Shown one piece after another: positions 3,052 to 34,221 of a stretch of DNA of 64,000 bases; positions within the stretch are counted from its first letter, which is position 1, and the number at the start of each line of letters is the position of its first letter. The DNA lies in sequence record LR756508.1; one strand, written 5' to 3'. The translations under genes and the position numbers were made by a program. The notes below the pieces were generated by a model, which did no database searches, was not told where the DNA came from, and saw only the letters and a program-made list of their open reading frames with translations.

Positions 3052-3711
3052 ATGGATTTTGTTAAGAAGTTCAAATATAAAAGTACAAAGCATGTCCCTT
3101 GGAGTCGAGAGGATTACAGGAAGTCCGACTGCCATTCTGATATAAGTTTTTTTGAAGGAAAAGAAGTTGTAATCACAGAAAAGATGGATGGCGAGGTGAG
3201 CAATATCTACCATGATGGATCTTTTCATGCCCGTTCACTTAACACACCTTATCATCCCTCTAGAGAATGGGCTGGACGTGTAGCTGGAGAGATTGGATTC
3301 AAGCTTCCAGGGGGTTGGAGAATCTGCGCAGAGAATGTTTATGCAAAGCACTCCATAAAGTATGATGACCTTAAAGCCTACATTCAAGCATTCTCGATCT
3401 GGAATAACGAGAACAGATGTTTAGACTGGGATCAGACAGAAGAATGGTGTAACCTCCTTGATATCGAACACGTTCCTGTTATCTGGAGAGGTGAGTATGA
3501 CCGCAAATTTATAGAAAACAAGTTCACACACAATAAACTTTGCGAAATGCGGGGCAGGGAGGTTGAAGGTTATGTGATGAGAACTGTTGATGGTTTTCAT
3601 TATAATGAGTTCGAAAAACATCTTGCCAAGTTTGTTCGCCAAAACCACGTTCAAACGAGCGAGCACTGGAGAAAGAAAAAAGTTGAACCAAATAAACTTA
3701 AATCGGAGTAA
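3052..3711 (+). CDS. ATP-dependent RNA ligase (short nucleotidyltransferase-domain-only type)
   Basis: Motif I EKMDG, motif III ENVY, IIIa AFSIW, IV EGYV, V KFVR. Confidence 0.85.
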   Translation: MDFVKKFKYKSTKHVPWSREDYRKSDCHSDISFFEGKEVVITEKMDGEVSNIYHDGSFHARSLNTPYHPSREWAGRVAGEIGFKLPGGWRICAENVYAKHSIKYDDLKAYIQAFSIWNNENRCLDWDQTEEWCNLLDIEHVPVIWRGEYDRKFIENKFTHNKLCEMRGREVEGYVMRTVDGFHYNEFEKHLAKFVRQNHVQTSEHWRKKKVEPNKLKSE

Positions 3712-3732
3712 TTAAAAATCAAACCTTTGGTT

Positions 3733-4131
3733 ATGGACATTTTCTGCGAAATTGATAAGCTTCATGTGGTAAAACTTCAAGATACTTTTGGATTATCACT
3801 AAACTGCAGACTCACTGTTACTCTTTGTAAGGATAAACAAAGCATGAGTTATGAAGTTTTCAACTATCTAAGAGACAATAACTGCTACGTCGAGCCATTG
3901 GAGAGAAATGATGAAGAAGTTTCGAAAGAAACAAAAAATAACAACTCTCTTCAAGTAGGAAGTAAGACTTCAATCGCTAAAGTTCTGATTACGACCACTC
4001 CATTCATTTCTAATGAAAACTTGGATGATAAAATTGAGAATCTGATTGGAGAAATTGAGTCAACAATTCGGTCGGTATATCTTAATATTAATCTTAATTT
4101 AGACGAAACCTATAATATTTCCAATGCTTAA
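3733..4131 (+). CDS. Hypothetical protein
   Basis: ORF coupled to the neighbouring genes. Confidence 0.55.
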   Translation: MDIFCEIDKLHVVKLQDTFGLSLNCRLTVTLCKDKQSMSYEVFNYLRDNNCYVEPLERNDEEVSKETKNNNSLQVGSKTSIAKVLITTTPFISNENLDDKIENLIGEIESTIRSVYLNINLNLDETYNISNA

Positions 4132-4459
4132 TATTTTTCTTGATGACAGTCGTAATCCAGAAGATGTTTATGGCGAAGGAGACGAGAGGGACTGGATAAT
4201 CTGCAGAAATCCATTTGAATTTAAAGAGGTTTTAAGAAACGAAAACTTGGATAACCGAAATCTTTTTGTGAGTTTTGACCATGACCTCGGAGAAGATGAG
4301 GACGATAAGTTAACTGAAACTGGCATGGACTGTGCGAAGTGGCTCGTTGAACAAAATATTGTTCCAGCCGATTACAACGTACACTCTGCGAATCCAGTAG
4401 GAGCAGAAAACATCCGCGTTTATATTAAAAACTGGATTGAATTTAATCAAGATGCTTAA
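4124..4459 (+). CDS. Cyclic-phosphate-processing receiver-domain protein (cREC-like)
   Basis: IFLDD-R-P, SFDHDLG, TGMDCAKWL, VHSANPVGAENI motif series. Confidence 0.8.
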   Translation: MLNIFLDDSRNPEDVYGEGDERDWIICRNPFEFKEVLRNENLDNRNLFVSFDHDLGEDEDDKLTETGMDCAKWLVEQNIVPADYNVHSANPVGAENIRVYIKNWIEFNQDA

Positions 4460-5090
4460 TCATCCGTTTTTTCGAAGCTTAGTTTCAAGCTTGCCAGTTC
4501 TTGGCTTCTGGTCTGTTGAAATTTTGATATGGGGAACTCTGCTTGTTCTTATTCCAGAGTCGACTCTTAGTTTGCCACTTGCCTTCTTCCTTTTATTCTT
4601 CTATCCAGTCCATCCTTACCTGTATAACTCCTCGAAGTTTTTCTCTAAAACGTTAAACAAAGAATTTAAAAAAAAGTATGGAAGCAAAGGCGTTCTTGCA
4701 AACTACAATGACGTTAAAGATTGGAAAGAAAAAGACGAACTCGAAGCCAAATTTTGGAGAAGCATAAAAAACAGAAAAGGTGAAGAAATTTACTGGAAAG
4801 AAGTTGAAGCTAGTTTTAACGAACCTGAGTATACGAAGTTCTATTTTCGTGGAATCTCTAGTCCAAACTATTTCATTCTTGAAGATATCTCTGGAGACCT
4901 ACATGAGGTTCATCACTGTGAGTTTCTGGACTTAACAAATAAAACCCATAAAGAAAGACTAAACGCCGAAAAACAAAAGGAGTTAAAACGAAAATTAAAA
5001 GAAGGAACTGTCTTCGAGAAAAGTCTACAAGAGCTCGAAGATAATTCAGTTAACGAGGTTTCATTCAAAAAGCTAAAAACAGGGGAGTGA
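4452..5090 (+). CDS. Hypothetical membrane protein
   Basis: Two N-terminal hydrophobic segments followed by a soluble domain. Confidence 0.6.
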   Translation: MLNHPFFRSLVSSLPVLGFWSVEILIWGTLLVLIPESTLSLPLAFFLLFFYPVHPYLYNSSKFFSKTLNKEFKKKYGSKGVLANYNDVKDWKEKDELEAKFWRSIKNRKGEEIYWKEVEASFNEPEYTKFYFRGISSPNYFILEDISGDLHEVHHCEFLDLTNKTHKERLNAEKQKELKRKLKEGTVFEKSLQELEDNSVNEVSFKKLKTGE

Positions 5091-6007
5091 GTACTTTTGA
5101 TGTCACCACAATTTATATGACCCAAGGCGTCCCTGCCTCTGGAAAAACCACATGGGCTCGCCAGAAGTTAAGAGAAGAGAATAGGATTAAACGCATCTGC
5201 AAGGATGATCTGCGTGACATGCTAGACAACGGAGAGTTTAACATGAAAAACGAACGTTATGTCTTGGATATGAGAAATGAAATGGTCGAAAGTGCACTTC
5301 TTCGAGGCAATGACATAATTCTTGATGATACAAACTTTAGCGACGACCATTGGAAAGCCATGCGAGATATTGCTAAACGCGTCGGAAATGTAAAAGTTGT
5401 TGAAATCTATTTTGAGGTAAGCCTCAAAGAAGCCAAGAAAAGAAATGAAAAAAGAAAAGAGACTGAAAGAGTTCCTGAACACATCATAGAAAACATGTTT
5501 GAAAAACACGTCAGGGGTGGAACTTCAGTATCGCAGCGAGAGGAGTTCTTTCCGAAAGCAGATCATCCTCATAGTCAAAGTCAAGCTGAAATTTTGACCG
5601 AGAGTTTTATAGTAGATTTGGATGGAACTTTAGCCTTGAACAATTCAGGTAGAGAATATAATGAGTTTCTTAAGGTTAAAGAAGATGACCCTAACATCCC
5701 TGTAGTAAGAATAGTGAATAAACTTTATGAGAGCTATGAGGATCTGGTTATCGTTACTGGACGTTCAGAGGAATGTAGAAAAGAATGCAGGGAGTGGTTA
5801 AATGTTTTTGAAATCCCTTTCGATCTGCTTTGTATGAGAGGCAAGCACGACTCGCGCCGAGACTCTGACGTAAAAAAGGAGATATACTGGGAAGTCATTC
5901 ACGATAGCCATTTTGTAAACTTTGTTATCGATGACAGGATGAGTGTAGTGAATATGTGGAGGTCACTTGGTATTCCTACTCTTCAAGTGTCTAAAGGCAC
6001 ATTTTAA
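5087..6007 (+). CDS. pseT: Polynucleotide 5'-kinase / 3'-phosphatase (T4 PseT-like)
   Basis: Walker A GVPASGKT, kinase DDTN, HAD DLDGT, VTGR and IDDR motifs; GTG start. Confidence 0.92.
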   Translation: MSTFDVTTIYMTQGVPASGKTTWARQKLREENRIKRICKDDLRDMLDNGEFNMKNERYVLDMRNEMVESALLRGNDIILDDTNFSDDHWKAMRDIAKRVGNVKVVEIYFEVSLKEAKKRNEKRKETERVPEHIIENMFEKHVRGGTSVSQREEFFPKADHPHSQSQAEILTESFIVDLDGTLALNNSGREYNEFLKVKEDDPNIPVVRIVNKLYESYEDLVIVTGRSEECRKECREWLNVFEIPFDLLCMRGKHDSRRDSDVKKEIYWEVIHDSHFVNFVIDDRMSVVNMWRSLGIPTLQVSKGTF

Positions 6008-6675: not shown

Positions 6676-6683
6676 GAAGTAGT

Positions 6684-9031: not shown

Positions 9032-9119
9032 AGAGAGAGATGCGAGATGGCTCTCGCTACTGACTTGAAATCAGTGGGAACCTGAAATATGGTTTGGGGA
9101 TCGAAACCTCCTCTCTCTG
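9032..9119 (+). tRNA. tRNA-Ser(TGA), non-canonical 8/4 cloverleaf with Sec-like D arm
   Basis: Acceptor AGAGAGAG/CTCTCTCT (8 bp), 6-bp D stem with TGGC loop, anticodon loop CT-TGA-AA, long V arm, 4-bp T stem with ATCGAAA loop, G73, no CCA. Confidence 0.85.
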
Positions 9120-9127
9120 CAACACAA

Positions 9128-9202
9128 GCGGGTGTAGATCAAGCGGCAGATCACTGGACTTCCATTCCAGAGGTTTTGTAGTTTCGACTACTACCACCCG
9201 CT
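9128..9202 (+). tRNA. tRNA-Gly(TCC)
   Basis: GCGGGTG/CACCCGC acceptor, loop CT-TCC-AT, TTCGACT T loop, U73, no CCA. Confidence 0.9.
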
Positions 9203-9287: not shown

Positions 9288-9378
9288 GGAGGAGTGGCAG
9301 AGCTCGGTTTAATGCGTCTCACTGCTACTGAGATTGGCTTGAATCATAGTCACGCAGGTTCAAATCCTGCCTCCTCCG
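9288..9378 (+). tRNA. tRNA-Ser(GCT), canonical 7/5
   Basis: GGAGGAG/CTCCTCC acceptor, loop CT-GCT-AC, long V arm, GCAGG-TTCAAAT-CCTGC T arm, G73, no CCA. Confidence 0.92.
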
Positions 9379-11072: not shown

Positions 11073-12281
11073 ATGTCAACTTTTGAGGTCCCAATTAAGA
11101 AGGTTCAAATTAAAAATCATCCAAATGCTGATCGGCTTTCTATTGCAGAAATCCAAGGAACAGAATATCAATCTTTAGTTGGAATTGGAGAATACGAGTC
11201 GGGAGATCTTGTGGCTTATATTCCTGAAGATTCTATCGTTCCAGAGTGGATTCAAGAAAAGCTTGGAGTGAAAGGAAAGCTTGCAGGATCTGACAAAAAC
11301 CGAATTCGTAGTGTTCGTCTTAGGGGGGTATATTCGCAGGGGCTCTGCTTTCCTGTTGAGAATATAACCAACCATCCGGAGTTTGATGATGGATACTATA
11401 TTTTTCGTGAGAGTAGAGCGCTGGATGGAAGGCTCAGTGAGATCGATAAGAACTATAGCGTTGATCCGCTTTACAAAAAAGTGGAAGTTGGAGATGACGT
11501 TCAAGACTTTCTTGGAATTGAAAAGTATGAACCTCCTGTGCCCGTTCACATGAGCGGAGAAGTGTTTAACGCTCGGGGCAACACCTTGAAGTACGATATT
11601 GAGAACTTCCGAAAGTATCCTGATGTCCTTGAGGAAGGTGAGGAAGTTGTGGTAATGGAGAAGCTCCATGGCACCTTTTGCTGCATTGGTGTGGTTCCCC
11701 AAGACGAAGCTTCCAGTTCTTCGGGACGCCACATTGTTACATCTAAAGGTCTTTCAGCCAAAGGGCTGGCCTTGAAGCTAAATGAAAAGAATGAAGACAA
11801 TGTTTACATTCGTGCAGCCAGAAAATACAAGCTCTTAGAGAAGCTTTCGCAAAAAGAGGAAGGTTATTATTATATCCTCGGAGAAGTTTTTGGTCGAAAG
11901 ATTCAAGACCTTGAGTATGGAGCAGAAAGAGATGAGCTATTTTTCCGAGTCTTCGATATTTATAAAGGATCTCCAAAACGCGGGAGTGAAGGAAGATATC
12001 TCAACGACGATGAACTTGATGAAGAAATTAATAGGTTCGGTCTAAAAAGAGTTCCCGTTTTTTATCGGGGACCTTATTCAAAGGAAAACGTTTCAAGGTT
12101 TGTAAGCGGCCAGGAAACAGTTTCTGGGGAAGAAAATCACATGCGAGAGGGAGTTGTTGTTCGCCCTACAGAAGAGCGACATGTCGAAGAAAACCTTCCG
12201 ATGGGTGGTCGCGTTCAATTGAAGTGGAAGAGTGAAGAATACAAGCTCAGAAATGAAAAGACAGCTACAGAAAGACGTTAA
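11073..12281 (+). CDS. RNA ligase, DRB0094/Rnl2-related family with N-terminal tRNA-binding-like domain
   Basis: N-terminal HPNADRL...GDLVAYIPEDS; motifs EKLHG, GEVFG, FDIY, EGVV, LKWKS. Confidence 0.9.
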   Translation: MSTFEVPIKKVQIKNHPNADRLSIAEIQGTEYQSLVGIGEYESGDLVAYIPEDSIVPEWIQEKLGVKGKLAGSDKNRIRSVRLRGVYSQGLCFPVENITNHPEFDDGYYIFRESRALDGRLSEIDKNYSVDPLYKKVEVGDDVQDFLGIEKYEPPVPVHMSGEVFNARGNTLKYDIENFRKYPDVLEEGEEVVVMEKLHGTFCCIGVVPQDEASSSSGRHIVTSKGLSAKGLALKLNEKNEDNVYIRAARKYKLLEKLSQKEEGYYYILGEVFGRKIQDLEYGAERDELFFRVFDIYKGSPKRGSEGRYLNDDELDEEINRFGLKRVPVFYRGPYSKENVSRFVSGQETVSGEENHMREGVVVRPTEERHVEENLPMGGRVQLKWKSEEYKLRNEKTATERR

Positions 12282-13795: not shown

Positions 13796-14014
13796 ATGAA
13801 TAAAAACTTTTTCGAGGATCGAGACATGTCGGTTGTTGGTGAGAATGAGTTTAGGCGTATTAACGTTTTCCAACAGGAAGTAAAAGGTGTGGTCGTATTC
13901 GAAAGAAAGTTTTGGAAGATTTGGAAGGTCGATCAAACACTAACTTGGGGCCAGTTTGATGTGAGCAGTTATTTTTTGAACCTTATCGGACAATTTTACT
14001 TCAAACTCAAATAA
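13796..14014 (+). CDS. Hypothetical protein
   Basis: 72-aa ORF whose stop overlaps the start of the RNase P RNA. Confidence 0.55.
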   Translation: MNKNFFEDRDMSVVGENEFRRINVFQQEVKGVVVFERKFWKIWKVDQTLTWGQFDVSSYFLNLIGQFYFKLK

Positions 14015-14228
14015 GGTCTATTCCGTCGCTCTACGGCTCAAAAAGAAGGTTGTAGAGAGGAAGCTCTAGATACCACCGCTCGCTGCGGGAGAGTCTGTTG
14101 ACTCGCTCCTAACCGCTTCACTGGTACAATCCCAAACAGTCCAGAGGTGTGAGCGGCCAGAGTTCTGGACGGGTAGGGTGCGCCGAGATAAATGATGGAT
14201 TGACACAGAATCTAGGCTATTAGACCTT
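14013..14228 (+). ncRNA. rnpB: Minimal RNase P RNA (~216 nt)
   Basis: P1 AAGGTCTA/TAGACCTT, P2 TCCGTC/GATGGA, P3 CTCTAC/GTAGAG, P4 AGC(T)CTAGA/TCTAGGCT with bulged U, CR-I GAGGAAG, CR-IV AGATAAATGA, CR-V ACAGAA. Confidence 0.88.
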
Positions 14229-14236
14229 TTAAAGAA

Positions 14237-14324
14237 AGAGGGTAAACTAGTGTTTGGCCTGCTAGGACAGACTCGAAATCTGTGCGTACCAAACTGGTAT
14301 GTGGTTCAAATCCACTGCCCTCTG
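14237..14324 (+). tRNA. tRNA-Ser(CGA), 8/4 cloverleaf
   Basis: Acceptor AGAGGGTA/TGCCCTCT (8 bp), T stem GTGG/CCAC (4 bp) with TTCAAAT loop, loop CT-CGA-AA, long V arm, G73, no CCA. Confidence 0.88.
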
Positions 14325-14419: not shown

Positions 14420-15245
14420 TTGAGTAGCTATAATTGTTAAATGTAAGTGTGGGAAAACGTTTAAGAATAAAGCAGGGTTGGGCAGCCATCAAAATTGGTG
14501 TGATGGAACAGGGTTGAGTTCAAATAAAAGTAAAAACAAAAAAGAGAAGAAGAAAGAGAAAATTGAAACTGAAAAATTATGTAACTATGGTTGCGGAGAA
14601 AAAGCCAAATGGAGTATGAAGAATGGAAATTTGTCCTGTTCCAAATATTCAGCTCAGTGTGAAGCTTTAAAAGAAAAGAACAGTAAAGGTTTAAAAGCTG
14701 CTTGGAAAGAAAATCCTTGAAGCAGTGGAGGTGATACTGGAGGCGGGTGGAATAAAGGAAAAACTTATGAGGAAGTCTACGGGGAAGATAGAGCCGAAAA
14801 AGTTAAAGACAAAATTTCTAATACACTTAAAAATAATGAAGAAAACTCATGGGATAAATTAAGTCCAAAGGAGAGGAAAAAAGCAGAAAAGAAACTGAGT
14901 GAGAATACAGGTGGTTATAGAAAAAAAGGTGGTAGAGGAAATGGATACTGGTACGAATCTGAAGTAAATGGGGAGATATGGCTTGATAGTAGTTATGAAT
15001 TAGCTTATGCTAAGTGGTTAGATAAAAACTTTGATAACTGGAAGAGAAACACATCCAAATTTGAATACTCTTTTAAAAATAAAAAGAAAAATTATATTCC
15101 CGATTTTTATATACCGAATAAAGAGGTTTATATTGAAATAAAAGGATATAAAACGGAACAAGATGAAGCTAAATGGAGGGATTTTCCGAAACAGTTAGAG
15201 GTTCTATACAAAGAGGACTTAATTGAAATCGGATGTGATTTATAG
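14420..15245 (+). pseudogene. Disrupted PD-(D/E)XK homing-type endonuclease (zinc finger + NUMOD3-like + nuclease)
   Basis: One frame runs 14424-15245 (KCKCGKTF..GLGSHQNWC; WNKGKTYEEVYG; DSSYE...YIPDFY...IEIKG) with an in-frame TGA at 14718-14720 and no canonical in-frame start before the zinc finger. Confidence 0.75.
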
Positions 15246-22249: not shown

Positions 22250-22606
22250 ATGAAACAAGATGGCATAATTGACCCAACAAAGTTGAATGTTGGAGATCTG
22301 GTTCAATACGAAGAAAAAAGTTATGGAGGTTACGTAGTTGAGATAATTAATGACTTTTCTGATGATAACTTTCTTCAATATCAAGCTCAAATAATTGAAC
22401 CAATTTATGGTTTTCATAAAAAAGGTTCCACTTTCACATTTGGCCATTCTTTGAAGAAAGAGGATCAATCTATGGTGAGTGTCCATTGTAATTGGAAGGT
22501 AAAAAAGGTTGGAAGTTTAACTTGTCACACACCACTTTCTGAAGACTTTAGTGTAAATGAGTTTCAAAATTTTGTTAAGTCACTCACCGAAAAGTATGTT
22601 GATTAA
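22250..22606 (+). CDS. Hypothetical protein
   Basis: 118-aa ORF coupled to the next gene. Confidence 0.55.
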   Translation: MKQDGIIDPTKLNVGDLVQYEEKSYGGYVVEIINDFSDDNFLQYQAQIIEPIYGFHKKGSTFTFGHSLKKEDQSMVSVHCNWKVKKVGSLTCHTPLSEDFSVNEFQNFVKSLTEKYVD

Positions 22607-23120
22607 GAAGGCGATGCATTTTGCGGGAGATGCTCACGATGGACAGGTGAGAAAATTTCAAAATGTCCCTTATATCCTGCATCCCATTTCCGTAGCGAAA
22701 CTTGTTGAAGTTTATAAAAAACCTAATTCTACTAATTTACTTCGAGTTCTCGCTCTTCTTCATGATACCGTTGAAGACACTGAAGTTTCTCTTTCTGAAA
22801 TTTCAGCAGAGTTCAATTTTAAAGTGGCTACTGTTGTGGAAGAACTTACAAATGATGAAGAAAAGATTGAAAAGGTTGGAAAAACCAATTATCTGCAAGA
22901 AACTCTGGTTGGAATGAGCAATAGTGCCTTGTATGTAAAGCTCTGCGATAGACTCGATAATGTTCTTGATCTTAAGTTGACTCCTAAACACTTTCGGGAG
23001 CGGTATGCTCAGGACACTGAAGACATAATCAAACATCTTATTTCAGAGAGAACTTTGATTAATTCTCAAAATCAGGTTGTAAGTAAGATCGAGGAAACTT
23101 TGAATAAGACGAAGTATTAA
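22596..23120 (+). CDS. HD-domain hydrolase, RelA/SpoT (Mesh1-like small alarmone hydrolase)
   Basis: AHDGQVRK..VPYILHP, ALLHDTVEDT, VEELT, VKLCDRLDN. Confidence 0.88.
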   Translation: MLIKKAMHFAGDAHDGQVRKFQNVPYILHPISVAKLVEVYKKPNSTNLLRVLALLHDTVEDTEVSLSEISAEFNFKVATVVEELTNDEEKIEKVGKTNYLQETLVGMSNSALYVKLCDRLDNVLDLKLTPKHFRERYAQDTEDIIKHLISERTLINSQNQVVSKIEETLNKTKY

Positions 23121-23207: not shown

Positions 23208-23678
23208 ATGTCCACTCACGACACGGCGATGAAAGAAAAAGATGCTCGCACTGAAAATAGCATGCCTACTTACTCTAGTTCTGGTTCAGAACTGGTAGAT
23301 ATGTTTTTTTCTATGGGTGCCTCTAGAGGTCGAAGCGAAGAATACATAAGAGGTATGTTTGAAAAAGCTTACAATCAAATGCCTCTTGAAACTCTCAAGG
23401 CTGCCTTTTACTGCCGAGACGTTCGTGGGGGGCAAGGCGAGCGCCGAACATTTCGTATCTTCTTTAGATACCTAGCTGAAAACGATCCGAACGTAGCACG
23501 CAGAAATCTTGAGCTTATTCCCGAGTATGGAAGATGGGATGACGTTTTACATTCCACAGTCGGTACTCCTGTTGAAGAGGATGCTCTTGAATTTATTGAA
23601 GAGCAACTCGGTGAAGACTGTGAAAAGTTGTTTGGAGAAGAGTTTTCGTTCAACAGTGTAAATGAATTTATTTCCTAA
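23208..23678 (+). CDS. DUF2828/TROVE-like protein, N-terminal part
   Basis: TEN...SSS.SELVDMFF, RDVRGGQGERRTFR, PEYGRWDD. Confidence 0.8.
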   Translation: MSTHDTAMKEKDARTENSMPTYSSSGSELVDMFFSMGASRGRSEEYIRGMFEKAYNQMPLETLKAAFYCRDVRGGQGERRTFRIFFRYLAENDPNVARRNLELIPEYGRWDDVLHSTVGTPVEEDALEFIEEQLGEDCEKLFGEEFSFNSVNEFIS

Positions 23679-24759
23679 CTGGTTATATAAAAAGATGGTC
23701 CAAACCGAAGAAAATAACGTATCTCTTCTTGCAAAGTGGCTTCCTTCCGAGGGGAAGGCTGATCACGATCACTACGTTCTTTTGAGAAACCATCTTGACG
23801 TTTCACCCCGTCAATATCGCAAGATGATTACAAGGCTGCGGAGTGAAATCGATGTGGTTGAGCAGAAAATGTGCGAAAACAACTGGACTGACATTGAATA
23901 TAGCGAGGTCCCTTCGCAGGCGATTAACATCTATCGCCGAGCCTTTGAGCGCCACGATCCCCAAGGCTTTAAAGGTTGGGTCGATGACGTTTACGACGAA
24001 GAACAAGAAGATGAGGAAGTAAAAGCAAATGCAATCTATCCTCATCAGATTACAGATCGATTTATCGGGGACATGTGGGGAGGATTTGCTAATATGTCCG
24101 ACGATGAGCGGCGCATGCTTCAAGCCCAGTGGGATAGTCTCCCTGACTACATTCCAGATGGCAGAAATATTTTGCCCGTCTGTGATACTTCCGGCTCTAT
24201 GACCCGAGATCATGCTATTAATGTTTCTCTTGGACTTGGGCTTTACATTAGCGAGAGAAATGATGGGCCATTTGAAGATTATGTTGCTACCTTTAGCCAG
24301 AGTCCAGACTTTGTTAAAATTGAAAGTGATGGGCTTAATGACCGAGTCCAAGAACTAGAGGGGATCAACTGGGGAAGCAATACTGATTTTGAATCTTTAA
24401 TTCGTGGCCTTTTGAAGCTTGCGATAAGGCACAACGTGAATGAAGAATTTATGCCCGAAACTGTCTTGGTATTAAGTGACATGCAATTTGACAGGTGCGT
24501 TCGCGAGCCAGATGATTCGGCTTATGAGATGTTTGAAAGAGAGTATGAAGAAGCAGGATACAAACTTCCAAACATTGTGTTTTGGAATCTTCGAGATTCG
24601 AGTGGAAATCCGGTGAAGTTTTCTTCTCAGGGAACTGCTTTGGTTTCAGGGTTTTCACCTTCAATTTTGGAAAATGTATTGGAAGGTGGAAATCTTACCC
24701 CAATTTCTATTGTGATGGAGACTATCAATGACGAGAGGTACGATCCAATAACACTTTAA
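23662..24759 (+). CDS. DUF2828/TROVE-like protein, C-terminal part with vWA domain
   Basis: LLAKWLPSEG, MIDAS-like CDTSGSM, WGSNTDF, LSDMQFD, IVFWNL, VSGFSP; +1 frame, overlapping the N part by 17 nt. Confidence 0.82.
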   Translation: MNLFPNWLYKKMVQTEENNVSLLAKWLPSEGKADHDHYVLLRNHLDVSPRQYRKMITRLRSEIDVVEQKMCENNWTDIEYSEVPSQAINIYRRAFERHDPQGFKGWVDDVYDEEQEDEEVKANAIYPHQITDRFIGDMWGGFANMSDDERRMLQAQWDSLPDYIPDGRNILPVCDTSGSMTRDHAINVSLGLGLYISERNDGPFEDYVATFSQSPDFVKIESDGLNDRVQELEGINWGSNTDFESLIRGLLKLAIRHNVNEEFMPETVLVLSDMQFDRCVREPDDSAYEMFEREYEEAGYKLPNIVFWNLRDSSGNPVKFSSQGTALVSGFSPSILENVLEGGNLTPISIVMETINDERYDPITL

Positions 24760-25172: not shown

Positions 25173-26288
25173 GTGGATTTTGATACCGTCCTTAGTGAAT
25201 TCAGCTTTCTGTCTGATATTCATCTCGCTGGTGGATGCGTCCGTGACTATATTATCGGTAGGAACTCAGACGATATTGATATTGCCACGTCTGATCTGCC
25301 GAAAACTGTCATCCACAAGGCAAAAAATAAAGATTTAAAGGTAATTGGAACAGGAATTGATTTTGGAACCGTTACGGTTTTTAAAGATGGAAAAAGTTTT
25401 GAAATTACCACGTTTCGGAGAGATCTAAATGCCGATGGCAGGCATGCTGATGTAAAGTTTACTGATAACATCGAAGTTGATCTTGAAAGAAGAGACTTTA
25501 CTATAAATGCCCTGGCGCTCGATAGAAACCTAAATCTTGTAGATCCATTTAGAGGCACTGTTGATATAAGACGTGAGCTAATCAAAGCCGTGGGTAATCC
25601 TATCGAGAGGTTTAAAGAAGATTATCTTCGGATAATTCGTGGATGTAGGTTTGCTTCAAGATATAATTACGATATTGAAGCTAATACGTTCATGGCTATG
25701 AAAGACCTCTCAAATGAAGTCTATAGTTCAGTTTCCATTGAGCGATTCTACATGGAACTAAAAAAGGCTTTCAAAGATAAAAAGCCATCTCGCTTCGTTC
25801 GTTTGATGAAGGTTTTTGGACTGAACCAGTCCGATAATATTCCATTAGAGACCCTGGATGAAGTGTATCCAAGACTGCGTCCAATAGTCTACTTTTTAAA
25901 CGTTTCCGATGTAGGTGAAAAATCTGAAGAACTCAAACTTCCTAATATTGTATCAAATGAAACGTCTCGCATTCAAGATCTTTTAGAGTTTGTTAAGAAA
26001 AGAAATCTTAGCGAGTATAACAGACGATTGTTTCAGTTTAAAACCCAAGGACTTTTGAATGAAACGAAAGAGATAGCTCAAAGTCTTAATACTATCTCTG
26101 ATCACAGAGTTAAATTCTTTTTTAAGCCTACAGATTTTCCTATTAACCCACTCGTCAATGGTACAGACTTTCTTGAATGTGGAGTTGAAGAAGGACCACA
26201 AATTGGAAAACTCATAGATAAAGCTCATAAAATTCAACTCAAAGAAGGAATCACTTCGAGCAGTGAACTGTTAGATAGAGTGGTTTAA
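25173..26288 (+). CDS. cca: CCA-adding tRNA nucleotidyltransferase (class II)
   Basis: AGGCVRD, DIDIAT, DLERRDFTINA, EDYLRIIRGCRF; GIDFGTV turn rather than a poly(A) polymerase signature. Confidence 0.88.
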   Translation: MDFDTVLSEFSFLSDIHLAGGCVRDYIIGRNSDDIDIATSDLPKTVIHKAKNKDLKVIGTGIDFGTVTVFKDGKSFEITTFRRDLNADGRHADVKFTDNIEVDLERRDFTINALALDRNLNLVDPFRGTVDIRRELIKAVGNPIERFKEDYLRIIRGCRFASRYNYDIEANTFMAMKDLSNEVYSSVSIERFYMELKKAFKDKKPSRFVRLMKVFGLNQSDNIPLETLDEVYPRLRPIVYFLNVSDVGEKSEELKLPNIVSNETSRIQDLLEFVKKRNLSEYNRRLFQFKTQGLLNETKEIAQSLNTISDHRVKFFFKPTDFPINPLVNGTDFLECGVEEGPQIGKLIDKAHKIQLKEGITSSSELLDRVV

Positions 26289-26315: not shown

Positions 26316-27320
26316 ATGGGAGGAAATGCTTTAAAAAATATTGAGACTTATCGGGCTGGACCTCAAAAATACATGAATGTATATAATCAGGTGATCTGCA
26401 GGCTTTCAAATGAGTATCCTGATTTAGTTCATTATCTGCCTAGACAGAACAGGAGTAAATCAGATCACGGCGATATCGATATTTTTCTCCGTTCTGATAC
26501 TGTTCCGAACCTTGGACCAGAAAAAATCAAGTCGCTTTTTAACCCAAACGAAATTTACTCAAATGGAGGTGTCTACAGTTTCGATCTATGGCAGTTTCAG
26601 GTTGATCTTGTAAAACAAAACCATGAAAATTGGCAATGCGCTAAAGTATTCTACGACCAAAGTGGTCTAGGAAATCTGAGTGGAAAAGTTGCTCGTAGAA
26701 TGAGGTTCAAGTGGGGGTTTCAAGGTCTTCGGTACATGGCTTTTTATGAAGATAATCGTTCGGTAAAGCTTGGTGAATTTGTTGTAAGTAAGAATCCAAG
26801 ACAAGTGTTCAAATTTCTTGGGTTTGATTTTGACAGGTTTTTGGAGGGATTTGAGACCCAGGAAGAAATGTTTGACTATGTAATTCAAAGTGAAAACTTT
26901 TCAATTGATGCTTTTCTACCAGAAAATTTAACTGCTGACCAGAGGCATCGAGATACAAAAAGACAGTCTTACCACGACTTTATGAATTATCTAGAGGAAA
27001 ACGCTCCAAACAAAAGAATGGAGCGTCCTTCTCATGAAGAAGCTGTAGAAATGGCCGAAGAGTTTTTTTCCGAATGTAAGCTTCGCGATAAAATAAGTGT
27101 TGCAAAAGAAAAATATGAAAAGAAGCAGCGTGCTAATGACATCTTTAATGGAAATGTATTGATTGATGAATTTGGCATAACTGGTAAAAGTCTTGGCGGG
27201 GCTATTGACAGGTTGAAAGATAAGTATGATAGTGAAGAAGCTTACCATAGTCACATCCTTGATGTAGGAAGAGAGGTCATGCTTGATGAATTTGCTGATG
27301 CCAATGATTTAGAGAGATAA
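26316..27320 (+). CDS. Putative nucleotidyltransferase (Pol-beta-like GDxD)
   Basis: N-terminal MGGNALK, KSDHGDIDIFL, FQVDLV. Confidence 0.55.
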   Translation: MGGNALKNIETYRAGPQKYMNVYNQVICRLSNEYPDLVHYLPRQNRSKSDHGDIDIFLRSDTVPNLGPEKIKSLFNPNEIYSNGGVYSFDLWQFQVDLVKQNHENWQCAKVFYDQSGLGNLSGKVARRMRFKWGFQGLRYMAFYEDNRSVKLGEFVVSKNPRQVFKFLGFDFDRFLEGFETQEEMFDYVIQSENFSIDAFLPENLTADQRHRDTKRQSYHDFMNYLEENAPNKRMERPSHEEAVEMAEEFFSECKLRDKISVAKEKYEKKQRANDIFNGNVLIDEFGITGKSLGGAIDRLKDKYDSEEAYHSHILDVGREVMLDEFADANDLER

Positions 27321-27345: not shown

Positions 27346-28194
27346 TTGACTCTCGAAGTAGACATGGATACCTCCAGCCTTGGCGACCGAATAAAACAAT
27401 ATGAGAGCGTCAGTGAGCAGGTGCTTCCTAATAATATTCCTGTAATAATCAGGCTGGATGGCAGTAATTTTTCTAAACTAACTGACCAATATTTTGATAA
27501 ACCTTTTGATGAAGAGTTTGAGTCTGCGATGAATCAAGCAGCACTGAGTGTTCTACGGTACTGTTCTGGTGCTCAAATAGCCCTTGTTCAATCTGATGAG
27601 ATTAATATTCTACTTAGAAATGATCAAAGCTCCGACTTTGATCCCTTTCTTTCTAACAGGACACAAAAACTTGCATCTCTTACTGCATCCAAAGCTTCCG
27701 TAGCTTTCAGCTCAAAACTTCGCGAATTTGATATAAAAAGAAATGAAGTTTTCGATTCCAGGGCTTTTGTAGTTCCAAAAAGTGAAGTTGTAAATGTTTT
27801 TATATGGAGGCAAGAAGATGCGTTTAAAAACTGCGTAAGTTCTATAGCTTACTTTGGCTTGAAAGAAAAGTATGGGACGGAAAAGGCGAATGATACTCTT
27901 TACGAAAAAGATTTAGATGAACGGCAAGAGATCATTTTCCAAGAACTAGGAAAAAATGTAAACAATGTAGTTACGAGCAGGAAGAGGGGGAGGTTAATTT
28001 ACAAAGTAAATGAAGAAGAAAAATACGAAAGTTATTTTTCAGATCAGAAGTATGAAAAGCTATTGTCAAACGGCTATATTGAAAAAGGAGGACACGTGGT
28101 TAGAAGCAGTTGGAAAATTGATAATAATCCACCCCGCCTTACTTCCGATGATGCTTTAATCAAAAACTTAGTATATGAAGATGGACAAAAGTAA
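27346..28194 (+). CDS. thg1: tRNA-His guanylyltransferase Thg1-like protein
   Basis: IIRLDGSNFSKLT, QSDEINILL, FDSRAF, WRQEDAFKN. Confidence 0.9.
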   Translation: MTLEVDMDTSSLGDRIKQYESVSEQVLPNNIPVIIRLDGSNFSKLTDQYFDKPFDEEFESAMNQAALSVLRYCSGAQIALVQSDEINILLRNDQSSDFDPFLSNRTQKLASLTASKASVAFSSKLREFDIKRNEVFDSRAFVVPKSEVVNVFIWRQEDAFKNCVSSIAYFGLKEKYGTEKANDTLYEKDLDERQEIIFQELGKNVNNVVTSRKRGRLIYKVNEEEKYESYFSDQKYEKLLSNGYIEKGGHVVRSSWKIDNNPPRLTSDDALIKNLVYEDGQK

Positions 28195-30433: not shown

Positions 30434-30877
30434 GGGACTGATACGGCTTCGACATCTTGTATGGAGTTGGAGCCACTACCTGGCGCAACATATGAGCGCC
30501 GTAAAGAAATTGAATATGAATCTATAACTGGCGTAAACAACGCTGATTACGAGTCTGCTGGATTTACGGCAGAGGACTTCGCACAGATGGACGGCGAAAG
30601 CCTCTATCATGGTAGCGAGCGTAAGCCTGCTGCTGTGTAAGTGAAGTTTTGGACTTGATTTAAAAGTCCACTCCATCGTTCCCCAACGCAGATAAGGATC
30701 GAACGGTGTCATATTTATCTGCTTGAGTAGACTGGCTGGCATCTGCCATTCTGCCGACATTTGAAGATGCCTGCTCCGTTTTGTGAATTTTGGGAGCTAA
30801 AACTAAATTCACTATGGTAGTGAACAATGGCAATAGCAAAGACAAGATGGACTCGGGTTCGACTCCCGACAGTTCCA
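30434..30877 (+). ncRNA. ssrA: tmRNA
   Basis: GGGACTG/CAGTTCC acceptor with G3-U70, A discriminator, 5' GATACGGCTTCGAC, P2 ATCTTGT/ACAAGAT, T arm TCGGG-TTCGACT-CCCGA; tag frame 30530-30640. Confidence 0.93.
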
Positions 30878-30886
30878 GATTCCAGG

Positions 30887-32125: not shown

Positions 32126-32188
32126 AAACATGTTTGTTAATCCCTCGTTATTAATCATACGCTACAACTCGAATAATTTCCTGGTTTC

Positions 32189-32905
32189 ATGTCCTCTAAA
32201 AAGCCACGGTCGACAATCCCAGAACTTCTTGGTTCTTGCGCTTTTGTTTTTTCCCTTTCAATGCTTTTTATGATTAACGGCCTCTCGGATTCATATTCGG
32301 AGAGAAAAAAACTTAGGGCAACTATTGACTCTTTTCAAACAGAACATGAATCCTTAGAGCGACGTTTTGCTGATATCAAGAAAAAGGCAAGGTCCACCGA
32401 TCCACGTGTAATCTGGCTTGCTCGGGCAATTTACAGCGAAACAAGGAGGAAAAGAGAAATGGAGCTTGTAGGATGGGTAATTAGAAATCGAGTTGAAAAA
32501 GAGTTTAGAAATGATAAAACTTACCGTGATGTAATTCTTTCATCTTATCAGTTTAGTGCATTTAATCCAAGATCTAAACTTCGGTTCTATTACGCTACTC
32601 TTCCATACTCCCACAAAGAAAGGAAAGAAAATTGGAACATGGCACTTCGAGTAGCAAAAGATGTTGTATTTGCCGAGCATCATGAAATGCCAAAGTATTT
32701 GACCGAAGACACTTTCTGGTTCTATTCAGAGGTATCTATGCCACCCGATAAACCACATCCGCAGTGGAGATATGAATATGAGAGAGTAGAAGTTCCGTTC
32801 GTGAACGAAGAGAGGTTTAGATTTTTTAGAGATCCTAACAGGGCGAGAATTGCTGCTGAACCTATTAAAAGAAATAAAAACACTCACACCTCCACATTGA
32901 GATGA
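32189..32905 (+). CDS. Cell wall hydrolase, SleB/Hydrolase_2-like, with N-terminal TM helix
   Basis: LARAIYSET, VGWVIRNRV, YQFSAFN. Confidence 0.8.
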   Translation: MSSKKPRSTIPELLGSCAFVFSLSMLFMINGLSDSYSERKKLRATIDSFQTEHESLERRFADIKKKARSTDPRVIWLARAIYSETRRKREMELVGWVIRNRVEKEFRNDKTYRDVILSSYQFSAFNPRSKLRFYYATLPYSHKERKENWNMALRVAKDVVFAEHHEMPKYLTEDTFWFYSEVSMPPDKPHPQWRYEYERVEVPFVNEERFRFFRDPNRARIAAEPIKRNKNTHTSTLR

Positions 32906-33507
32906 TAAATCCACATGATATAACAAACTTCGAAAGATCCGAAAAAGAGCTTGAAGAGTTTTTGCTATTTGCAGTGTCTGTAGCTGGAAAAACTGCAGAG
33001 GTTCAAGCAGATAAACTTGATCAATTCTTAAACCTTGTTCCGCTACCCGAATATTATTCACCTTTTGAGAAAGTAAGATATCTTGTATTAAAAAGTTATT
33101 GTTCACTGAACAACTATCTTAAAACCGTAAAACTTGGAAAATACTCACTTCTTGAAGACTCGTTCCGTTCTCTTTCTTTTAGTAACATAGATTTGAGGTC
33201 TATATCCTGTAAAGATTTACAGTCGTTTCCAGGAATAGGACCTAAGACTTCTCGTTTTTTTATCTTGCATTCTCGGTTAAATGCTGGGGTCGCTTGCCTG
33301 GATACTCATATTTTGAAATGGCTCTCTGAGTATTTGAATGAAGTAGATGTGCCTAATTCTACTCCAAGACGAAGTGAGTATAATACTCTAGAGAGTAGGT
33401 TTATAGAAATCTGCAATTCAAATAATGTCCATCCAGCCAAATTGGATCTGAAAATTTGGAAAATGTACAATAAAAACAATGAAGAAGAGATAGCTTCAGT
33501 TCTCTGA
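32902..33507 (+). CDS. HhH-GPD family DNA glycosylase-like protein
   Basis: LQSFPGIGPKTSRFF (HhH with Lys), LDTHIL. Confidence 0.8.
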   Translation: MINPHDITNFERSEKELEEFLLFAVSVAGKTAEVQADKLDQFLNLVPLPEYYSPFEKVRYLVLKSYCSLNNYLKTVKLGKYSLLEDSFRSLSFSNIDLRSISCKDLQSFPGIGPKTSRFFILHSRLNAGVACLDTHILKWLSEYLNEVDVPNSTPRRSEYNTLESRFIEICNSNNVHPAKLDLKIWKMYNKNNEEEIASVL

Positions 33508-33552
33508 TCACATATTTTAAACCTAAAAGCTCAGAAATAATTAAACGAGGTT

Positions 33553-34221
33553 ATGAGTGAATCTGTTGAAGAAGATAATATAATTCCGCTTGTTAAAAAC
33601 AATAAAGTTAAACTACGTCAATCCTCGGAGCCAGTTACTGAAGAAGACGACTGGGAAGGACTGAAAGATCTTTTATATTGTAATCTCGCTCACTATGGGG
33701 GAATTGGACTTTCGGCTATCCAGTTGGATATTCCTAAGTCTGCTTGCGTTGTCAACGTAAAAGAGCCAATTTTTCTTGTGAATCCCGAAATTGTGGAGGC
33801 GCAAGGAAACACGAAGTACGTAGAGGGCTGCCTTTCTTTTCCAAATGACGTGGTAGCTACAGAGCGTTATACGGAAATTCTTGTCGAGGCCGATAATTTT
33901 GACCAAAAACTCCATTTCGCTCCCGACGATGAGGATCTAATTCCAGCTTCATACGAAGACAATATGGAGATGGAGGATGACGAGGGTCTGCTTGAGTGTA
34001 TTGCTACTCAACACGAAACGGATCACACCAATGGTTTATTGTTTTTTGATCGCCGCGCCGAACGTGGCGAGACTTACGAGAAAGAAAAAACTCAAGACAT
34101 CGGGCGAAATGATAGAGTGAGGGTTCGCAATAAGGATGGCGTCGTTAGCACAGTAAAATATAAATACGTGAGCGACCAGATTGAAAACGGAAACGTCGAA
34201 CTTTTGGAAGTCGTGAATTAA
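33553..34221 (+). CDS. def: Peptide deformylase
   Basis: GIGLSAIQL, EGCLS, QHETDH. Confidence 0.93.
   Translation: MSESVEEDNIIPLVKNNKVKLRQSSEPVTEEDDWEGLKDLLYCNLAHYGGIGLSAIQLDIPKSACVVNVKEPIFLVNPEIVEAQGNTKYVEGCLSFPNDVVATERYTEILVEADNFDQKLHFAPDDEDLIPASYEDNMEMEDDEGLLECIATQHETDHTNGLLFFDRRAERGETYEKEKTQDIGRNDRVRVRNKDGVVSTVKYKYVSDQIENGNVELLEVVN

Follow-up and report, generated by a model that had tools for sequence, protein, structure and literature searches.

We found that a 484-kb uncultured phage (LR756508.1) carries a conserved block of genes for finishing, repairing and rescuing tRNAs. It includes a half-size RNase P ribozyme gene belonging to an apparently undescribed family that sits inside phage tRNA gene arrays. 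The analysed window is a 64,000-nucleotide stretch of this record. The original prediction proposed that positions 3052-34221 encode a self-contained pathway of tRNA maturation, repair and ribosome rescue. The observation behind it was confirmed, as every listed component is present and all lie on the + strand. The interpretation was only partly supported, since independence from the host is overstated. The relevant features are the following.

3052..3711 (+), small ATP-dependent RNA ligase-like nucleotidyltransferase (219 aa), first gene of a tight Rnl-x-cREC-x-Pnkp block
3727..4131 (+), conserved ORF of unknown function inside the repair block
4124..4459 (+), cREC, the cyclic-phosphate-processing receiver domain protein
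4437..5090 (+), lineage-restricted ORF (212-217 aa) between cREC and Pnkp, function unknown
5087..6007 (+), Pnkp, a 5'-kinase and 3'-phosphatase of the T4 PseT type
9032..9119 (+), tRNA-Ser(UGA) with 8-bp acceptor stem, 4-bp T stem and 6-bp D stem
9128..9202 (+), tRNA-Gly(UCC), canonical
9288..9378 (+), tRNA-Ser(GCU), canonical 7/5
11073..12281 (+), Rnl5-type (DraRnl/NgrRnl) RNA ligase with an N-terminal OB domain and a nucleotidyltransferase domain
14010..14231 (+), mini RNase P RNA made of the catalytic domain only
14237..14324 (+), tRNA-Ser(CGA), 8/4 type, starting about 6 nt after the RNase P RNA
15244..15332 (+), fifth tRNA, Ser(GGA), 8/4 type
20649..21425 (+), R2K-clade ATP-grasp protein, a conserved neighbour of Pth2
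21430..21780 (+), Pth2 peptidyl-tRNA hydrolase
22557..23120 (+), SpoT-type HD hydrolase, resembling a small alarmone hydrolase
23208..23678 (+), N-terminal piece of a split Ro60-like (TROVE) protein
23662..24759 (+), C-terminal piece of the split Ro60-like protein, with the rest of the TROVE domain and a vWA domain
25173..26288 (+), class II CCA-adding enzyme
26316..27320 (+), Pol-beta/lambda-fold nucleotidyltransferase, conserved between the cca and thg1-like genes
27346..28194 (+), Thg1-like 3'-5' polymerase (TLP)
30434..30880 (+), tmRNA
33553..34221 (+), peptide deformylase

To identify the proteins, we searched the translations against Pfam and NCBIfam and read the catalytic motifs in alignments or in the translations. 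In the repair block, the small ligase matched PF09414 (102 bits) and retains KMDG, EGYVMR and AKFV motifs, with no PDB sequence hit and no NCBIfam hit. cREC matched PF20274 (79.9 bits), a family defined in Iyer et al. 2021 (PMC7824862). Pnkp matched HAD_PNKP (130.6 bits) and AAA_33, aligns end to end with Pnkp1 (4xrp) and T4 Pnk (1ltq), and contains the P-loop GVPASGKT, DDLR and DLDGT. The ORF at 3727-4131 matched no family at threshold. The ORF at 4437-5090 had no Pfam, PHROG or NCBIfam hit and only 3 homologue clusters among 1.8 billion proteins. The second ligase matched PF21189 (the PHA02142 OB domain) and PF09414, passed TIGR02306 (RNA_lig_DRB0094) at 225 bits against a cut-off of 151, and aligns to NgrRnl (5cot) with the KLHG lysine motif. 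The ligases had been predicted to belong to different families. However, both match the same Pfam family and are distant paralogues, 27% identical over 86 aa, and neither is Rnl1 or RtcB.

Further downstream, the R2K-clade protein matched PF14243 and PF18299, and Pth2 matched PF01981 (120 bits) and aligns over its full length to 2zv3. The HD hydrolase matched PF13328 (52.5 bits) and the N-terminal region of TIGR00691. The Ro-like gene is not a single gene but two overlapping ORFs: the first covers DUF2828 positions 1-89 with conserved motifs present, and the second covers DUF2828 positions 284-395 plus DUF7788 (168 bits), with the MIDAS motif DTSGS. The split is conserved in relatives. The structural model of an unsplit homologue matches Ro60 at TM 0.57-0.66. 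The CCA-adding enzyme has a PolyA_pol head (99 bits), its best NCBIfam match is the CCA model NF009814 (206 bits, below the cut-off of 290), and it aligns to 6ibp/1miv with GGxVRD..DID, RRD and EDxxR. The adjacent transferase, which had not been listed, has invariant hGDxD plus a third acidic column in 45 homologues; its AF2 model (pLDDT 95) matched Pol lambda and Pol beta in Foldseek at probability 1.0. The Thg1-like protein matched PF04446 (100 bits) and Thg1C and keeps the RLDG and SDE carboxylates. Its best PDB hit is the B. thuringiensis TLP 4kgk, and no tRNA-His gene is in the window. Therefore, templated 5'-end repair is more likely than the predicted G-1 addition. Deformylase matched PF01327 (79 bits) with GIGLSAIQ, EGCLS and HETDH motifs. 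Overall, catalytic motifs look intact in the CCA-adding enzyme, Thg1-like protein, Pnkp, both ligases, Pth2 and deformylase.

ARAGORN called four of the five tRNAs. Gly(UCC) and Ser(GCU) also matched RF00005 (55.7 and 56.5 bits), and Ser(UGA) and Ser(CGA) were supported by folding (z=-3.5 for Ser(UGA)). The fifth, Ser(GGA), was missed by ARAGORN and Rfam, but its 3' part is repeated with the other 8/4 tRNAs and its MFE fold is a cloverleaf with 8-bp acceptor and 4-bp T stems (z=-2.6). The tmRNA was found by ARAGORN and by RF00023 (72 bits, cut-off 47); its tag reading frame is ambiguous. As predicted, none of the five tRNAs nor the tmRNA is followed by an encoded CCA.

Next, we examined the mini RNase P RNA, which is real. 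It was invisible at Rfam's gathering score and in a 37-kb E-value scan, whereas a 2-kb scan detected RF00010 at 14010-14235 with 49 bits (E=1.4e-13), below Rfam's threshold but spanning the full model with P7-P14 and P18 deleted. The RNA retains P1-P5, an inner stem, P15-P17 with the L15 GGU motif, J18/2, and P4 with a bulged U. Its 3' tail is the 5' leader of the next tRNA. A motif scan recovered 72 relatives, all with full P4 complementarity. Of these, 56 lie within 1 kb of tRNA genes, and 244 of 245 of those tRNAs are on the same strand. Many have a tRNA starting 16-24 nt after the P4 3' strand. On 39 distinct members, 90.4% of cells were paired, against 65% in shuffles and 29-41% with slid partners, and 32 of 40 pairs carry compensatory changes. 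P4 and P1 of this alignment were selected for, and the CGGGTA, ACAGAA and GAGGAAG motifs are invariant only because the search pattern required them. Our own model, R1, found 14 held-out members at 95-160 bits and the copy described here at 123 bits, the only one in the window. No paper describing this RNA was found.

A patchy and independent distribution among relatives had been named beforehand as an outcome that would count against the pathway, and we compared gene order in related phage contigs (numbered L094-L100). The protein genes keep their order at about 80% and down to about 40-55% amino-acid identity, which answers this criterion for the protein genes. The order ZnR-R2K-PTH2-YopX-(HD)-Ro-orf117-CCA-PolX-like-Thg1-protease is conserved in L094-L096 and L100 (61-83% aa) and in L097 (36-60% aa). 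Individually, synteny was recorded for the R2K protein in L094, L097 and L100, for the HD hydrolase in L097 and L100, for the Pol-beta-fold transferase in L094, L096, L097 and L100, and for the same 156-aa N-terminal Ro ORF in L094-L096 and L100. The tmRNA is 94% identical in L100. The five-gene Rnl-x-cREC-x-Pnkp block occurs in L098/L099, with a 129-aa ORF at the position of 3727-4131, and is followed by the same tRNA-Ser and tRNA-Gly. This comparison included no close relative contig covering the RNase P position. However, Rnl5-type ligase homologues lie within about 3 kb of mini RNase P RNAs in four other contigs (L005, L038, L066 and L074) and about 6 kb away in a fifth (L032), and a Thg1-like gene recurs next to the RNA in one contig.

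We consider it most likely, with a probability of roughly 0.6, that this is a conserved, single-strand accessory island that services the phage's own small RNAs (four tRNA-Ser, three of them of the 8/4 allo-tRNA type, one tRNA-Gly and a tmRNA) and repairs tRNAs damaged during infection. In this view, the tRNAs are transcribed as precursors, one of which also contains the roughly 220-nt RNase P RNA. This RNA, probably together with host RnpA protein, would cut the 5' leaders of phage (and host) pre-tRNAs, and cutting tRNA-Ser(CGA) would also define its own 3' end. Host nucleases would remove the 3' trailers, and the phage CCA-adding enzyme would build the missing CCA, with which the L15 GGU motif can pair. 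For broken or nibbled tRNAs, cREC and Pnkp would convert 2',3'-cyclic-phosphate/5'-OH ends into 3'-OH/5'-phosphate ends, the two ATP-dependent ligases would seal them, and the Thg1-like enzyme would refill 5' ends on the 3' strand as template. The CCA enzyme, and possibly the Pol-beta-fold transferase, would rebuild 3' ends, while the two-piece Ro60-like ring would handle misfolded RNA. Finally, Pth2, tmRNA and deformylase would clear stalled ribosomes and process nascent chains. Our data demonstrate the presence of the components, their intact motifs, the conserved synteny of the protein blocks, and the RNA family with its covariation and tRNA linkage, while every activity, the substrates, the order of steps and the dependence on host RnpA are inferences. 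That a bacterial C-domain alone is catalytically competent, and that Pyrobaculum uses a natural form lacking the specificity domain (review PMC4919922), supports this reading.

The claim that the phage needs little host input was not supported. Pfam searches of the 64 kb found no RnpA, 3'-trailer nuclease (RNase Z or exonucleases), SmpB, seryl- or glycyl-tRNA synthetase or modification enzyme, and the pathway leans on the host. In addition, the Rnl-Pnkp and CCA-Thg1 blocks are about 20 kb apart, separated by TnpB insertions, a repeat-rich 748-aa protein and unrelated genes. Promoter and terminator scans were at chance level, and there are no expression data. Co-expression, also named in advance as a criterion, could not be assessed. 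The claim of going beyond the T4 repair pair is not new for the proteins, as the toolkit is already described for jumbo phages (PMC7824862), and CCA-adding enzyme, deformylase and tmRNA are listed in huge phages (Al-Shayeb et al. 2020, PMC7162821).

An alternative, which we regard as unlikely, is that the island is purely a counter-defence repair kit against host anticodon nucleases and other tRNA-targeting toxins, with the mini RNase P RNA acting not as a ribozyme but as a decoy or regulator that titrates host RnpA, or as a structured spacer that organises processing of the tRNA precursor by the host enzyme. The protein set matches a repertoire described as a response to host attack on tRNAs, a SpoT-type HD hydrolase sits in the same block, the RNA lacks the specificity domain with no phage RnpA found, and many family members are wedged between two tRNAs like a spacer. 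However, the parts conserved across the family are exactly the catalytic ones (P4 with bulged U, CR-I and CR-V, J18/2, and L15 GGU), and a spacer or protein sponge would not need all of them.

It is also unlikely, and slightly more so, that the clustering is only a by-product of a plastic accessory region in which auxiliary genes, tRNAs and mobile elements accumulate and each gene acts independently. In line with this, there are three TnpB copies in the window, two of which interrupt the island, a homing-endonuclease-like remnant between the tRNAs that also interrupts it, GIY-YIG or intein insertions in relatives, and interspersed unrelated genes (a cell-wall hydrolase, YopX and the 748-aa repeat protein). 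Moreover, in the more distant Bacillus phage G and Acinetobacter ME3, the Thg1 or PolX-like homologues are not clustered with repair genes. Against it, gene order of the two blocks is kept at 40-55% protein identity, genes in the Rnl-to-Pnkp block abut or overlap, and the Rnl5 ligase recurs beside the mini RNase P RNA in unrelated contigs. That the RNA is a decaying fragment of a captured host rnpB gene is very improbable. Although it scores only 49 bits and has lost about 40% of the RF00010 model, there are 61 distinct relatives with the same deletions, compensatory changes occur in eight helices, and placement in tRNA arrays on the tRNA strand is consistent. The family is absent from bacterial chromosomes in the GTDB scan, apart from two small MAG contigs. 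The covariation data already contradict this reading, and the members are not recent copies of one sequence, as mean column identity is 51%.

Among the closest known systems is the jumbo-phage RNA-repair and ribosome-rescue repertoire (Iyer, Anantharaman, Krishnan, Burroughs & Aravind 2021, PMC7824862; Burroughs & Aravind 2016), which has the same parts list of phage tRNAs, ATP-dependent RNA ligases (Rnl/RtcB), Pnk, cRec, ROT/TROVE protein, CCA-adding enzyme, Thg1 and PTH2, all read as answers to host attack on the translation apparatus. That survey does not mention RNase P RNA and calls Thg1 and TROVE sporadic, whereas here nearly all parts sit in one syntenic island together with a ribozyme gene, 8/4 tRNAs, tmRNA and a conserved PolX-like transferase. 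T4 Pnkp (PseT) plus Rnl1, which repair PrrC-cut tRNA-Lys, share a Pnkp with both active sites and ATP-dependent ligases next to it. Here, however, there is no Rnl1 (gp63-type) ligase but an Rnl5/DRB0094 type and a minimal PF09414 enzyme, the Pnkp is closest to bacterial Pnkp1 (4xrp), and cREC and unknown ORFs are added to the block. Ro60/Rsr with Y RNA (Deinococcus Rsr 2nvo; Thermus phage phiLo Ro60 9l5y) shares the TROVE ring and vWA/MIDAS fold; here no Y-RNA partner was identified, and the gene is split into two translationally overlapping ORFs in this lineage. The (8/4) allo-tRNA-Ser of bacteria and phages (Mukai et al. 2017, PMC5389517) share the 8-bp acceptor stem, 4-bp T stem, long variable arm and Ser anticodons, which three of the five tRNAs here fit. 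Here they lie next to an RNase P RNA and in the same island as a CCA enzyme and a TLP, links that are not discussed in that paper.

Bacterial type A RNase P RNA (RF00010) shares CR-I and CR-V, P4 with bulged U, P1-P5, P15-P17 with L15 GGU, and J18/2, with an alignment spanning model positions 1-367. The phage RNA lacks the whole specificity domain (P7-P14, CR-II and CR-III) and P18, is about 185-235 nt instead of 340-420 nt, is phage-borne inside tRNA arrays and scores below the gathering threshold (47-49 bits against 100). The Pyrobaculum minimal (type P/T) RNase P RNA (Lai et al. 2010; RF02357) is likewise a natural RNA reduced to the catalytic domain. However, it is archaeal, works with archaeal proteins and lacks the bacterial L15 GGU module, and RF02357 gave no hit here even at E<=10; the phage RNA derives from the bacterial type A design.

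To verify the components listed in the original prediction, we first scanned with Pfam every + strand ORF of 80 aa or more between 3052 and 34591 and searched the same DNA for structured RNAs. Bases 15680-19586 are 100% identical to the genome record LR756508.1, the only record hit, which is an unannotated 484,177-bp 'uncultured phage' entry; huge-phage genomes of this kind are described by Al-Shayeb et al. 2020 (PMC7162821), whose main text does not name this accession. All genes discussed are on the + strand. The proteins and RNAs that had been listed, together with the elements that we add below, are as follows.

3052-3711, + strand, RNA ligase (PF09414), 219 aa
4124-4459, + strand, cREC receiver (cREC_REC)
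5087-6007, + strand, Pnkp (AAA_33 kinase plus HAD_PNKP)
9032-9119, + strand, tRNA-Ser(UGA)
11073-12281, + strand, second RNA ligase with a PHA02142 OB domain, 402 aa
14010-14235, + strand, mini RNase P RNA (extent of the RF00010 hit)
14237-14324, + strand, tRNA-Ser(CGA)
15244-15332, + strand, fifth tRNA, with anticodon GGA
20649-21425, + strand, R2K ATP-grasp protein (added here)
21430-21780, + strand, PTH2
22557-23120, + strand, HD hydrolase of the SpoT type (added here)
23208-24759, + strand, DUF2828 and DUF7788, the split Ro-like gene
25173-26288, + strand, PolyA_pol head domain, the CCA enzyme
26316-27320, + strand, predicted Pol-beta/lambda-fold (PolX-like) nucleotidyltransferase (added here)
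27346-28194, + strand, Thg1 plus Thg1C
30434-30880, + strand, tmRNA
33553-34221, + strand, Pep_deformylase

Thus, the original prediction was correct as to what the sequence contains. ARAGORN called four tRNAs but not the fifth, whose 3′ part repeats that of the other serine tRNAs. Minimum free energy folding of 9032-9119, 14237-14324 and 15244-15332 resulted in cloverleaves with an 8-bp acceptor stem, a 4-bp T stem and a long variable arm, as in the (8/4) allo-tRNAs. Such 8/4 serine tRNAs are already known from phages (Mukai et al., PMC5389517). Four of the five tRNAs within 9032-15332 are serine tRNAs (UGA, GCU, CGA and GGA) and together read all six serine codons; the reason for this bias is unknown. 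Between the two 8/4 tRNA-Ser genes, at 14478-15245, lies a broken reading frame that appears to be frameshifted, and whose C-terminal part reads like a PD-(D/E)XK-type homing endonuclease (YIPDFYIP, YIEIKGY), comparable to SegB in the T4 tRNA cluster. The tmRNA, with its tRNA-like domain, pseudoknots and a tag reading frame, scores 72 bits on RF00023 against a cut-off of 47. A roughly 95-nt insertion lies in the tag region (30530-30640). The tag is uncertain: ARAGORN gives GRRKPLSW, while a 36-codon frame from 30530 is also open and ends in ERKPAAV, which looks more tag-like. As had been predicted, none of the five tRNAs or the tmRNA is followed by CCA.

Next, we asked whether the enzymes are catalytically intact, since several dead components had been named in advance as an outcome that would count against a joint pathway. 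The CCA enzyme aligns with solved class II CCA-adding enzymes and keeps head-domain motifs A (GGxVRD..DxD), B (RRD) and D (EDxxR), plus the flexible loop; the alignment to 6ibp shows LAGGCVRD..DIDIA, ERRDFTINA and KEDYLRIIR. The best NCBIfam match is a CCA model, but at 206 bits it stays below its cut-off of 290, and although the motifs are compatible with CCA addition, its specificity for C, C and A over A only, CC only or poly(A) was not assayed. In the Thg1-like protein, RLDG and QSDE align with RIDG and QSDE of the Bacillus thuringiensis Thg1-like protein (TLP) 4kgk, so the palm-domain carboxylates are kept. The proposed G-1 addition to tRNA-His is left undecided by our data, as there is no tRNA-His gene in the window, the closest structure is a bacterial TLP and the eukaryotic Thg1 matches are much weaker; templated 5′-end repair is the more likely activity. 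A single-protein scan of IMG/VR with the Thg1-like protein found nothing. Pnkp aligns end to end with Pnkp1 and T4 Pnk and keeps the kinase P-loop and catalytic Asp (GVPASGKT, KDDLR) and the phosphatase DxDxT motif (VDLDGTL). Pth2 carries a full-length PTH2 domain at 120 bits, aligned over residues 6-116 to 2zv3, and the deformylase keeps GIGLSAIQ, EGCLSFP and QHETDH.

The two ligases had been described as belonging to different families. The 402-aa ligase is of the Rnl5 (DraRnl/NgrRnl) type: it has an N-terminal OB domain plus a nucleotidyltransferase domain (PF21189 plus PF09414), passes the DRB0094 equivalog model TIGR02306 at 225 bits against 151, and aligns with Naegleria Rnl5, with its lysine motif KLHG matched to KLDG of 5cot. 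The 219-aa ligase shows KMDG, EGYVMR and AKFV but has no solved relative. However, the two are distant paralogues within one Pfam family, and 'different families' is therefore true only in the Rnl1-5 nomenclature. No Rnl1 (T4 gp63) or RtcB family was hit by any ORF of 80 aa or more in 3052-34591.

We add three proteins to the list. ORF 26316-27320, between cca and thg1, has an invariant hGDxD signature in 45 homologues, and its AlphaFold model (pLDDT 95) matches DNA polymerases lambda and beta; it is a third nucleotidyltransferase. In addition, the SpoT-type HD hydrolase and the R2K ATP-grasp protein flank Pth2. Hydrolases of the former type can reverse alarmone synthesis and the pyrophosphorylation of tRNA CCA ends by toxic RelA-SpoT homologues, which would fit the tRNA-repair theme. 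A further ORF, orf217 (4437-5090), has too few homologues for a model.

The Ro-like gene is split into ORFs of 156 and 365 aa that overlap by 17 nt, and DTSGS, the MIDAS motif of the vWA domain, is present. The closest homologues, at 95%, 73% and 60% identity, are also about 350 aa, whereas more distant ones are single proteins of 470-490 aa. The same two ORFs occur in the relative contigs L094-L096 and L100, which indicates that the split is a conserved feature and not an assembly error. A model of the unsplit homologue P0005, 55% identical, matches Ro60 (1yvr/2i91) at TM 0.57-0.66, Deinococcus Rsr (2nvo) at TM 0.50 and a recently solved phage Ro60, consistent with a TROVE alpha-solenoid ring plus a vWA domain. 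Unlike a single-polypeptide Ro60 with a Y-RNA partner, the gene is in two pieces, and no Y-RNA family was hit. A candidate new ncRNA, and a possible partner of the Ro-like protein, is a roughly 410-nt non-coding stretch at 6640-7050, between the Pnkp block and the tRNA cluster. It is about 96% identical to the relative contigs L098/L099, while its flanks are about 50-60% identical and the neighbouring proteins about 86%. One of its hairpins shows a compensatory change (CUGUA..UACAG versus CUGCA..UGCAG), all six frames are closed by stops, and no Rfam family hits at E<=10.

We then turned to the mini RNase P RNA. Motif searches for the canonical CR-I and CR-V strings with mismatches were at chance level; the phage RNA has GAGGAAGCUC, one A shorter than the consensus. 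Rfam at gathering score and at E<=1 over 37 kb also missed it, and only short-stretch scans with laxer filters found it. A scan of 13650-15700 gave RF00010 at 14010-14235 with 49 bits and E=1.4e-13, covering model positions 1-367, against a gathering score of 100 bits. Two other members reach 46.9 bits (RF00010) and 48.8 bits (RF00373), the rest being lost to filters, which explains why the family is unannotated. The RNA ends a few bases before tRNA-Ser(CGA). We first suspected that 13655-14236 was a TnpB guide RNA. The first two of the three TnpB (IS605 OrfB) genes of the window (12363-13689, 18288-19632 and 56880-58097) share a 76-nt 3′ end at 83% identity that runs about 35 nt past the stop codon and is probably the guide-RNA scaffold, but they share sequence only up to about 13689 and 19632, so the RNase P RNA lies outside the element.

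To find relatives, we searched for GAGGAAG, a gap, CGGGTA, a gap, then ACAGAANNNNGGCT. This pattern returned 9 loci from IMG/VR, 9 from one-genome-per-species bacteria and archaea, and 74 from metagenomes. Complementarity at the P4 positions that the pattern leaves free is complete in 72 of the 92 loci, where we estimate that a few percent would be complete by chance. Of those 72, 56 have tRNA genes within 1 kb, and 244 of 245 of those tRNAs are on the same strand, whereas only one of the 20 other loci has any tRNA. Many members are wedged between two tRNAs, with the downstream tRNA starting 16-24 nt after P4. A blastn search of the RNA against 50,697 phage records found only the genome itself, and a 468-kb relative genome seen in the protein database was not in the phage collection, so that whether the closest relative keeps the RNA was not examined. 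Only two small MAG contigs represent the family in the genome collection, and the family therefore looks phage-borne.

An alignment of 39 distinct members trimmed at P1 has a mean identity of 51%. RNAalifold independently recovered P4, P5, an inner stem, P15 and P16. For a structure with P1-P5, the inner stem, P15 and P16, 90.4% of cells are paired, compared with 65% in shuffles and 29-41% with slid partners, and 32 of 40 pairs show changes on both sides. P1 and P4 were selected for, whereas the other six helices were not. In P4, formed by CR-I (GAGGAA.G.UC) and CR-V (ACAGAA...GGCU), the window pairs, numbering 14010 as 1, are A53-U209, G54-C208, C55-G207, C57-G206, U58-A205, A59-U204, G60-C203 and A61-U202, with U56 bulged; 100% of cells are paired in the 39 members and 4 pairs carry compensatory changes. 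An initial register with a bulged C was rejected, as the alignment shows the universal bulged U. The remaining catalytic-domain helices are 80-97% paired, with changes on both sides in 28 of their 32 pairs, and the RF00010 alignment covers P1, P2, P3, P5 and P15-P17, with the L15 GGU loop and J18/2; as the CGGGTA motif was part of the search pattern, its invariance is not independent evidence. In contrast, the specificity domain (P7-P14, CR-II and CR-III) and P18 are absent: about 110 plus 24 model positions are replaced by about 48 and 2 nt, and the same holds in all 39 aligned members. A covariance model built from this alignment, R1, found 14 held-out members at 95-160 bits and exactly one copy in the window. 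A subgroup with a different 5′/3′ end arrangement (contigs L057, L091 and L092) was kept out of the alignment, yet it scores 110-119 bits with R1.

A survey of gene neighbourhoods in related phages had been proposed beforehand, with patchy and independent distribution of the components as the adverse outcome. Relatives at about 61-83% protein identity (L094-L096, L100) and at 36-60% (L097) keep the order Zn-ribbon, R2K, PTH2, YopX, (HD), Ro-like, orf117, CCA, PolX-like, Thg1-like, trypsin-like protease. L100 also keeps the tmRNA, 94% identical, and the deformylase, which there carries an intein with a LAGLIDADG endonuclease (L100 17229-18986; 585 aa against 222 aa here), and in L094/L096 a GIY-YIG endonuclease gene sits between cca and the PolX-like gene. 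L098 and L099 keep Rnl, x, cREC, x, Pnkp, and L098 ends in the same tRNA-Ser(UGA) and tRNA-Gly(UCC). In Bacillus phage G and Acinetobacter phage ME3, however, the Thg1 or PolX-like homologues are not clustered with repair genes. The second TnpB copy (18288-19586) has no counterpart at the corresponding place in L100 and is probably an insertion, while the place matching the first copy (12363-13655) is not covered by any fetched relative. Between these two copies sits a 748-aa protein (15680-17926) with five 153-156-nt tandem repeats (16472-17141), weak beta-propeller/Kelch hits and a match to a phage structural-protein PHROG, which seems unrelated to the RNA theme. Rnl5-type ligase genes lie within about 3 kb of mini RNase P RNAs in four unrelated contigs and about 6 kb away in a fifth, and one of these contigs also has a Thg1-like gene. 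Near the mini RNase P RNAs of contigs L005, L032, L050 and L092, ORFs with a GGQ motif, resembling class I release factors or ArfB, recur on the same strand within 5 kb, as do HNH endonuclease genes.

Pfam scans of the rest of the window showed an IMPDH-type enzyme, helicase, primase, the third TnpB and many unknowns, but no RnpA, SmpB, RNase Z-type nuclease, synthetase or modification enzyme. The phage therefore still needs the host for 3′ trimming, the RNase P protein, SmpB, charging and modification. Promoter and terminator scans were at chance level, and expression was not assessed. The proposed interpretation, a self-contained pathway, is thus only partly supported: the island is a real, conserved unit with intact enzymes, but it does not stand alone. 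For phage biology, it shows that end-processing, end-repair and ribosome-rescue genes can travel together as a conserved unit, and it offers a concrete system for testing phage escape from tRNA-targeting defences.

A reading that goes beyond the observed sequence, structure and placement of the RNA family, and to which we give a probability of about 0.55, is that phages carry their own RNase P ribozyme. It would be a previously undescribed class of bacterial-type RNase P RNA stripped to the catalytic domain (about 185-235 nt), transcribed inside phage tRNA arrays and released by the same cleavage that it catalyses. Removal of pre-tRNA 5′ leaders by this RNA was not measured here. In this view, it lets the phage process its tRNAs, including non-canonical ones such as 8/4 tRNAs, independently of the host rnpB RNA, and in this genome it is one step of an island that also adds CCA and rebuilds both tRNA ends. 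RNase P RNA is regarded as a universal cellular housekeeping ribozyme. A natural, widespread, bacterial-type RNA without the specificity domain would give a minimal model for RNase P catalysis and substrate choice, would explain how large phage tRNA arrays are matured during host shut-off, and would show that standard annotation misses a whole ribozyme class.

In comparison with known systems, the protein content of the island is a known jumbo-phage repertoire, and the new element is the RNase P RNA. The jumbo-phage survey (Iyer et al. 2021, PMC7824862) never mentions RNase P, and our literature searches found no report of a phage-encoded RNase P RNA or of a virus encoding one. The archaeal minimal RNase P model (RF02357, type T/P) gave no hit at E<=10 in 13650-15700. 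A review states that the bacterial C-domain alone is catalytic and that Pyrobaculum uses a C-domain-only RNA (PMC4919922). The phage RNA differs from the bacterial type A ribozyme in its structure, lacking the specificity domain and P18, and in its new kind of carrier, and it has many relatives. Two-thirds of the tRNAs next to other family members encode CCA (184 of 274), whereas here none do and a CCA enzyme is supplied, which fits a ribozyme that keeps the CCA-binding L15 loop.
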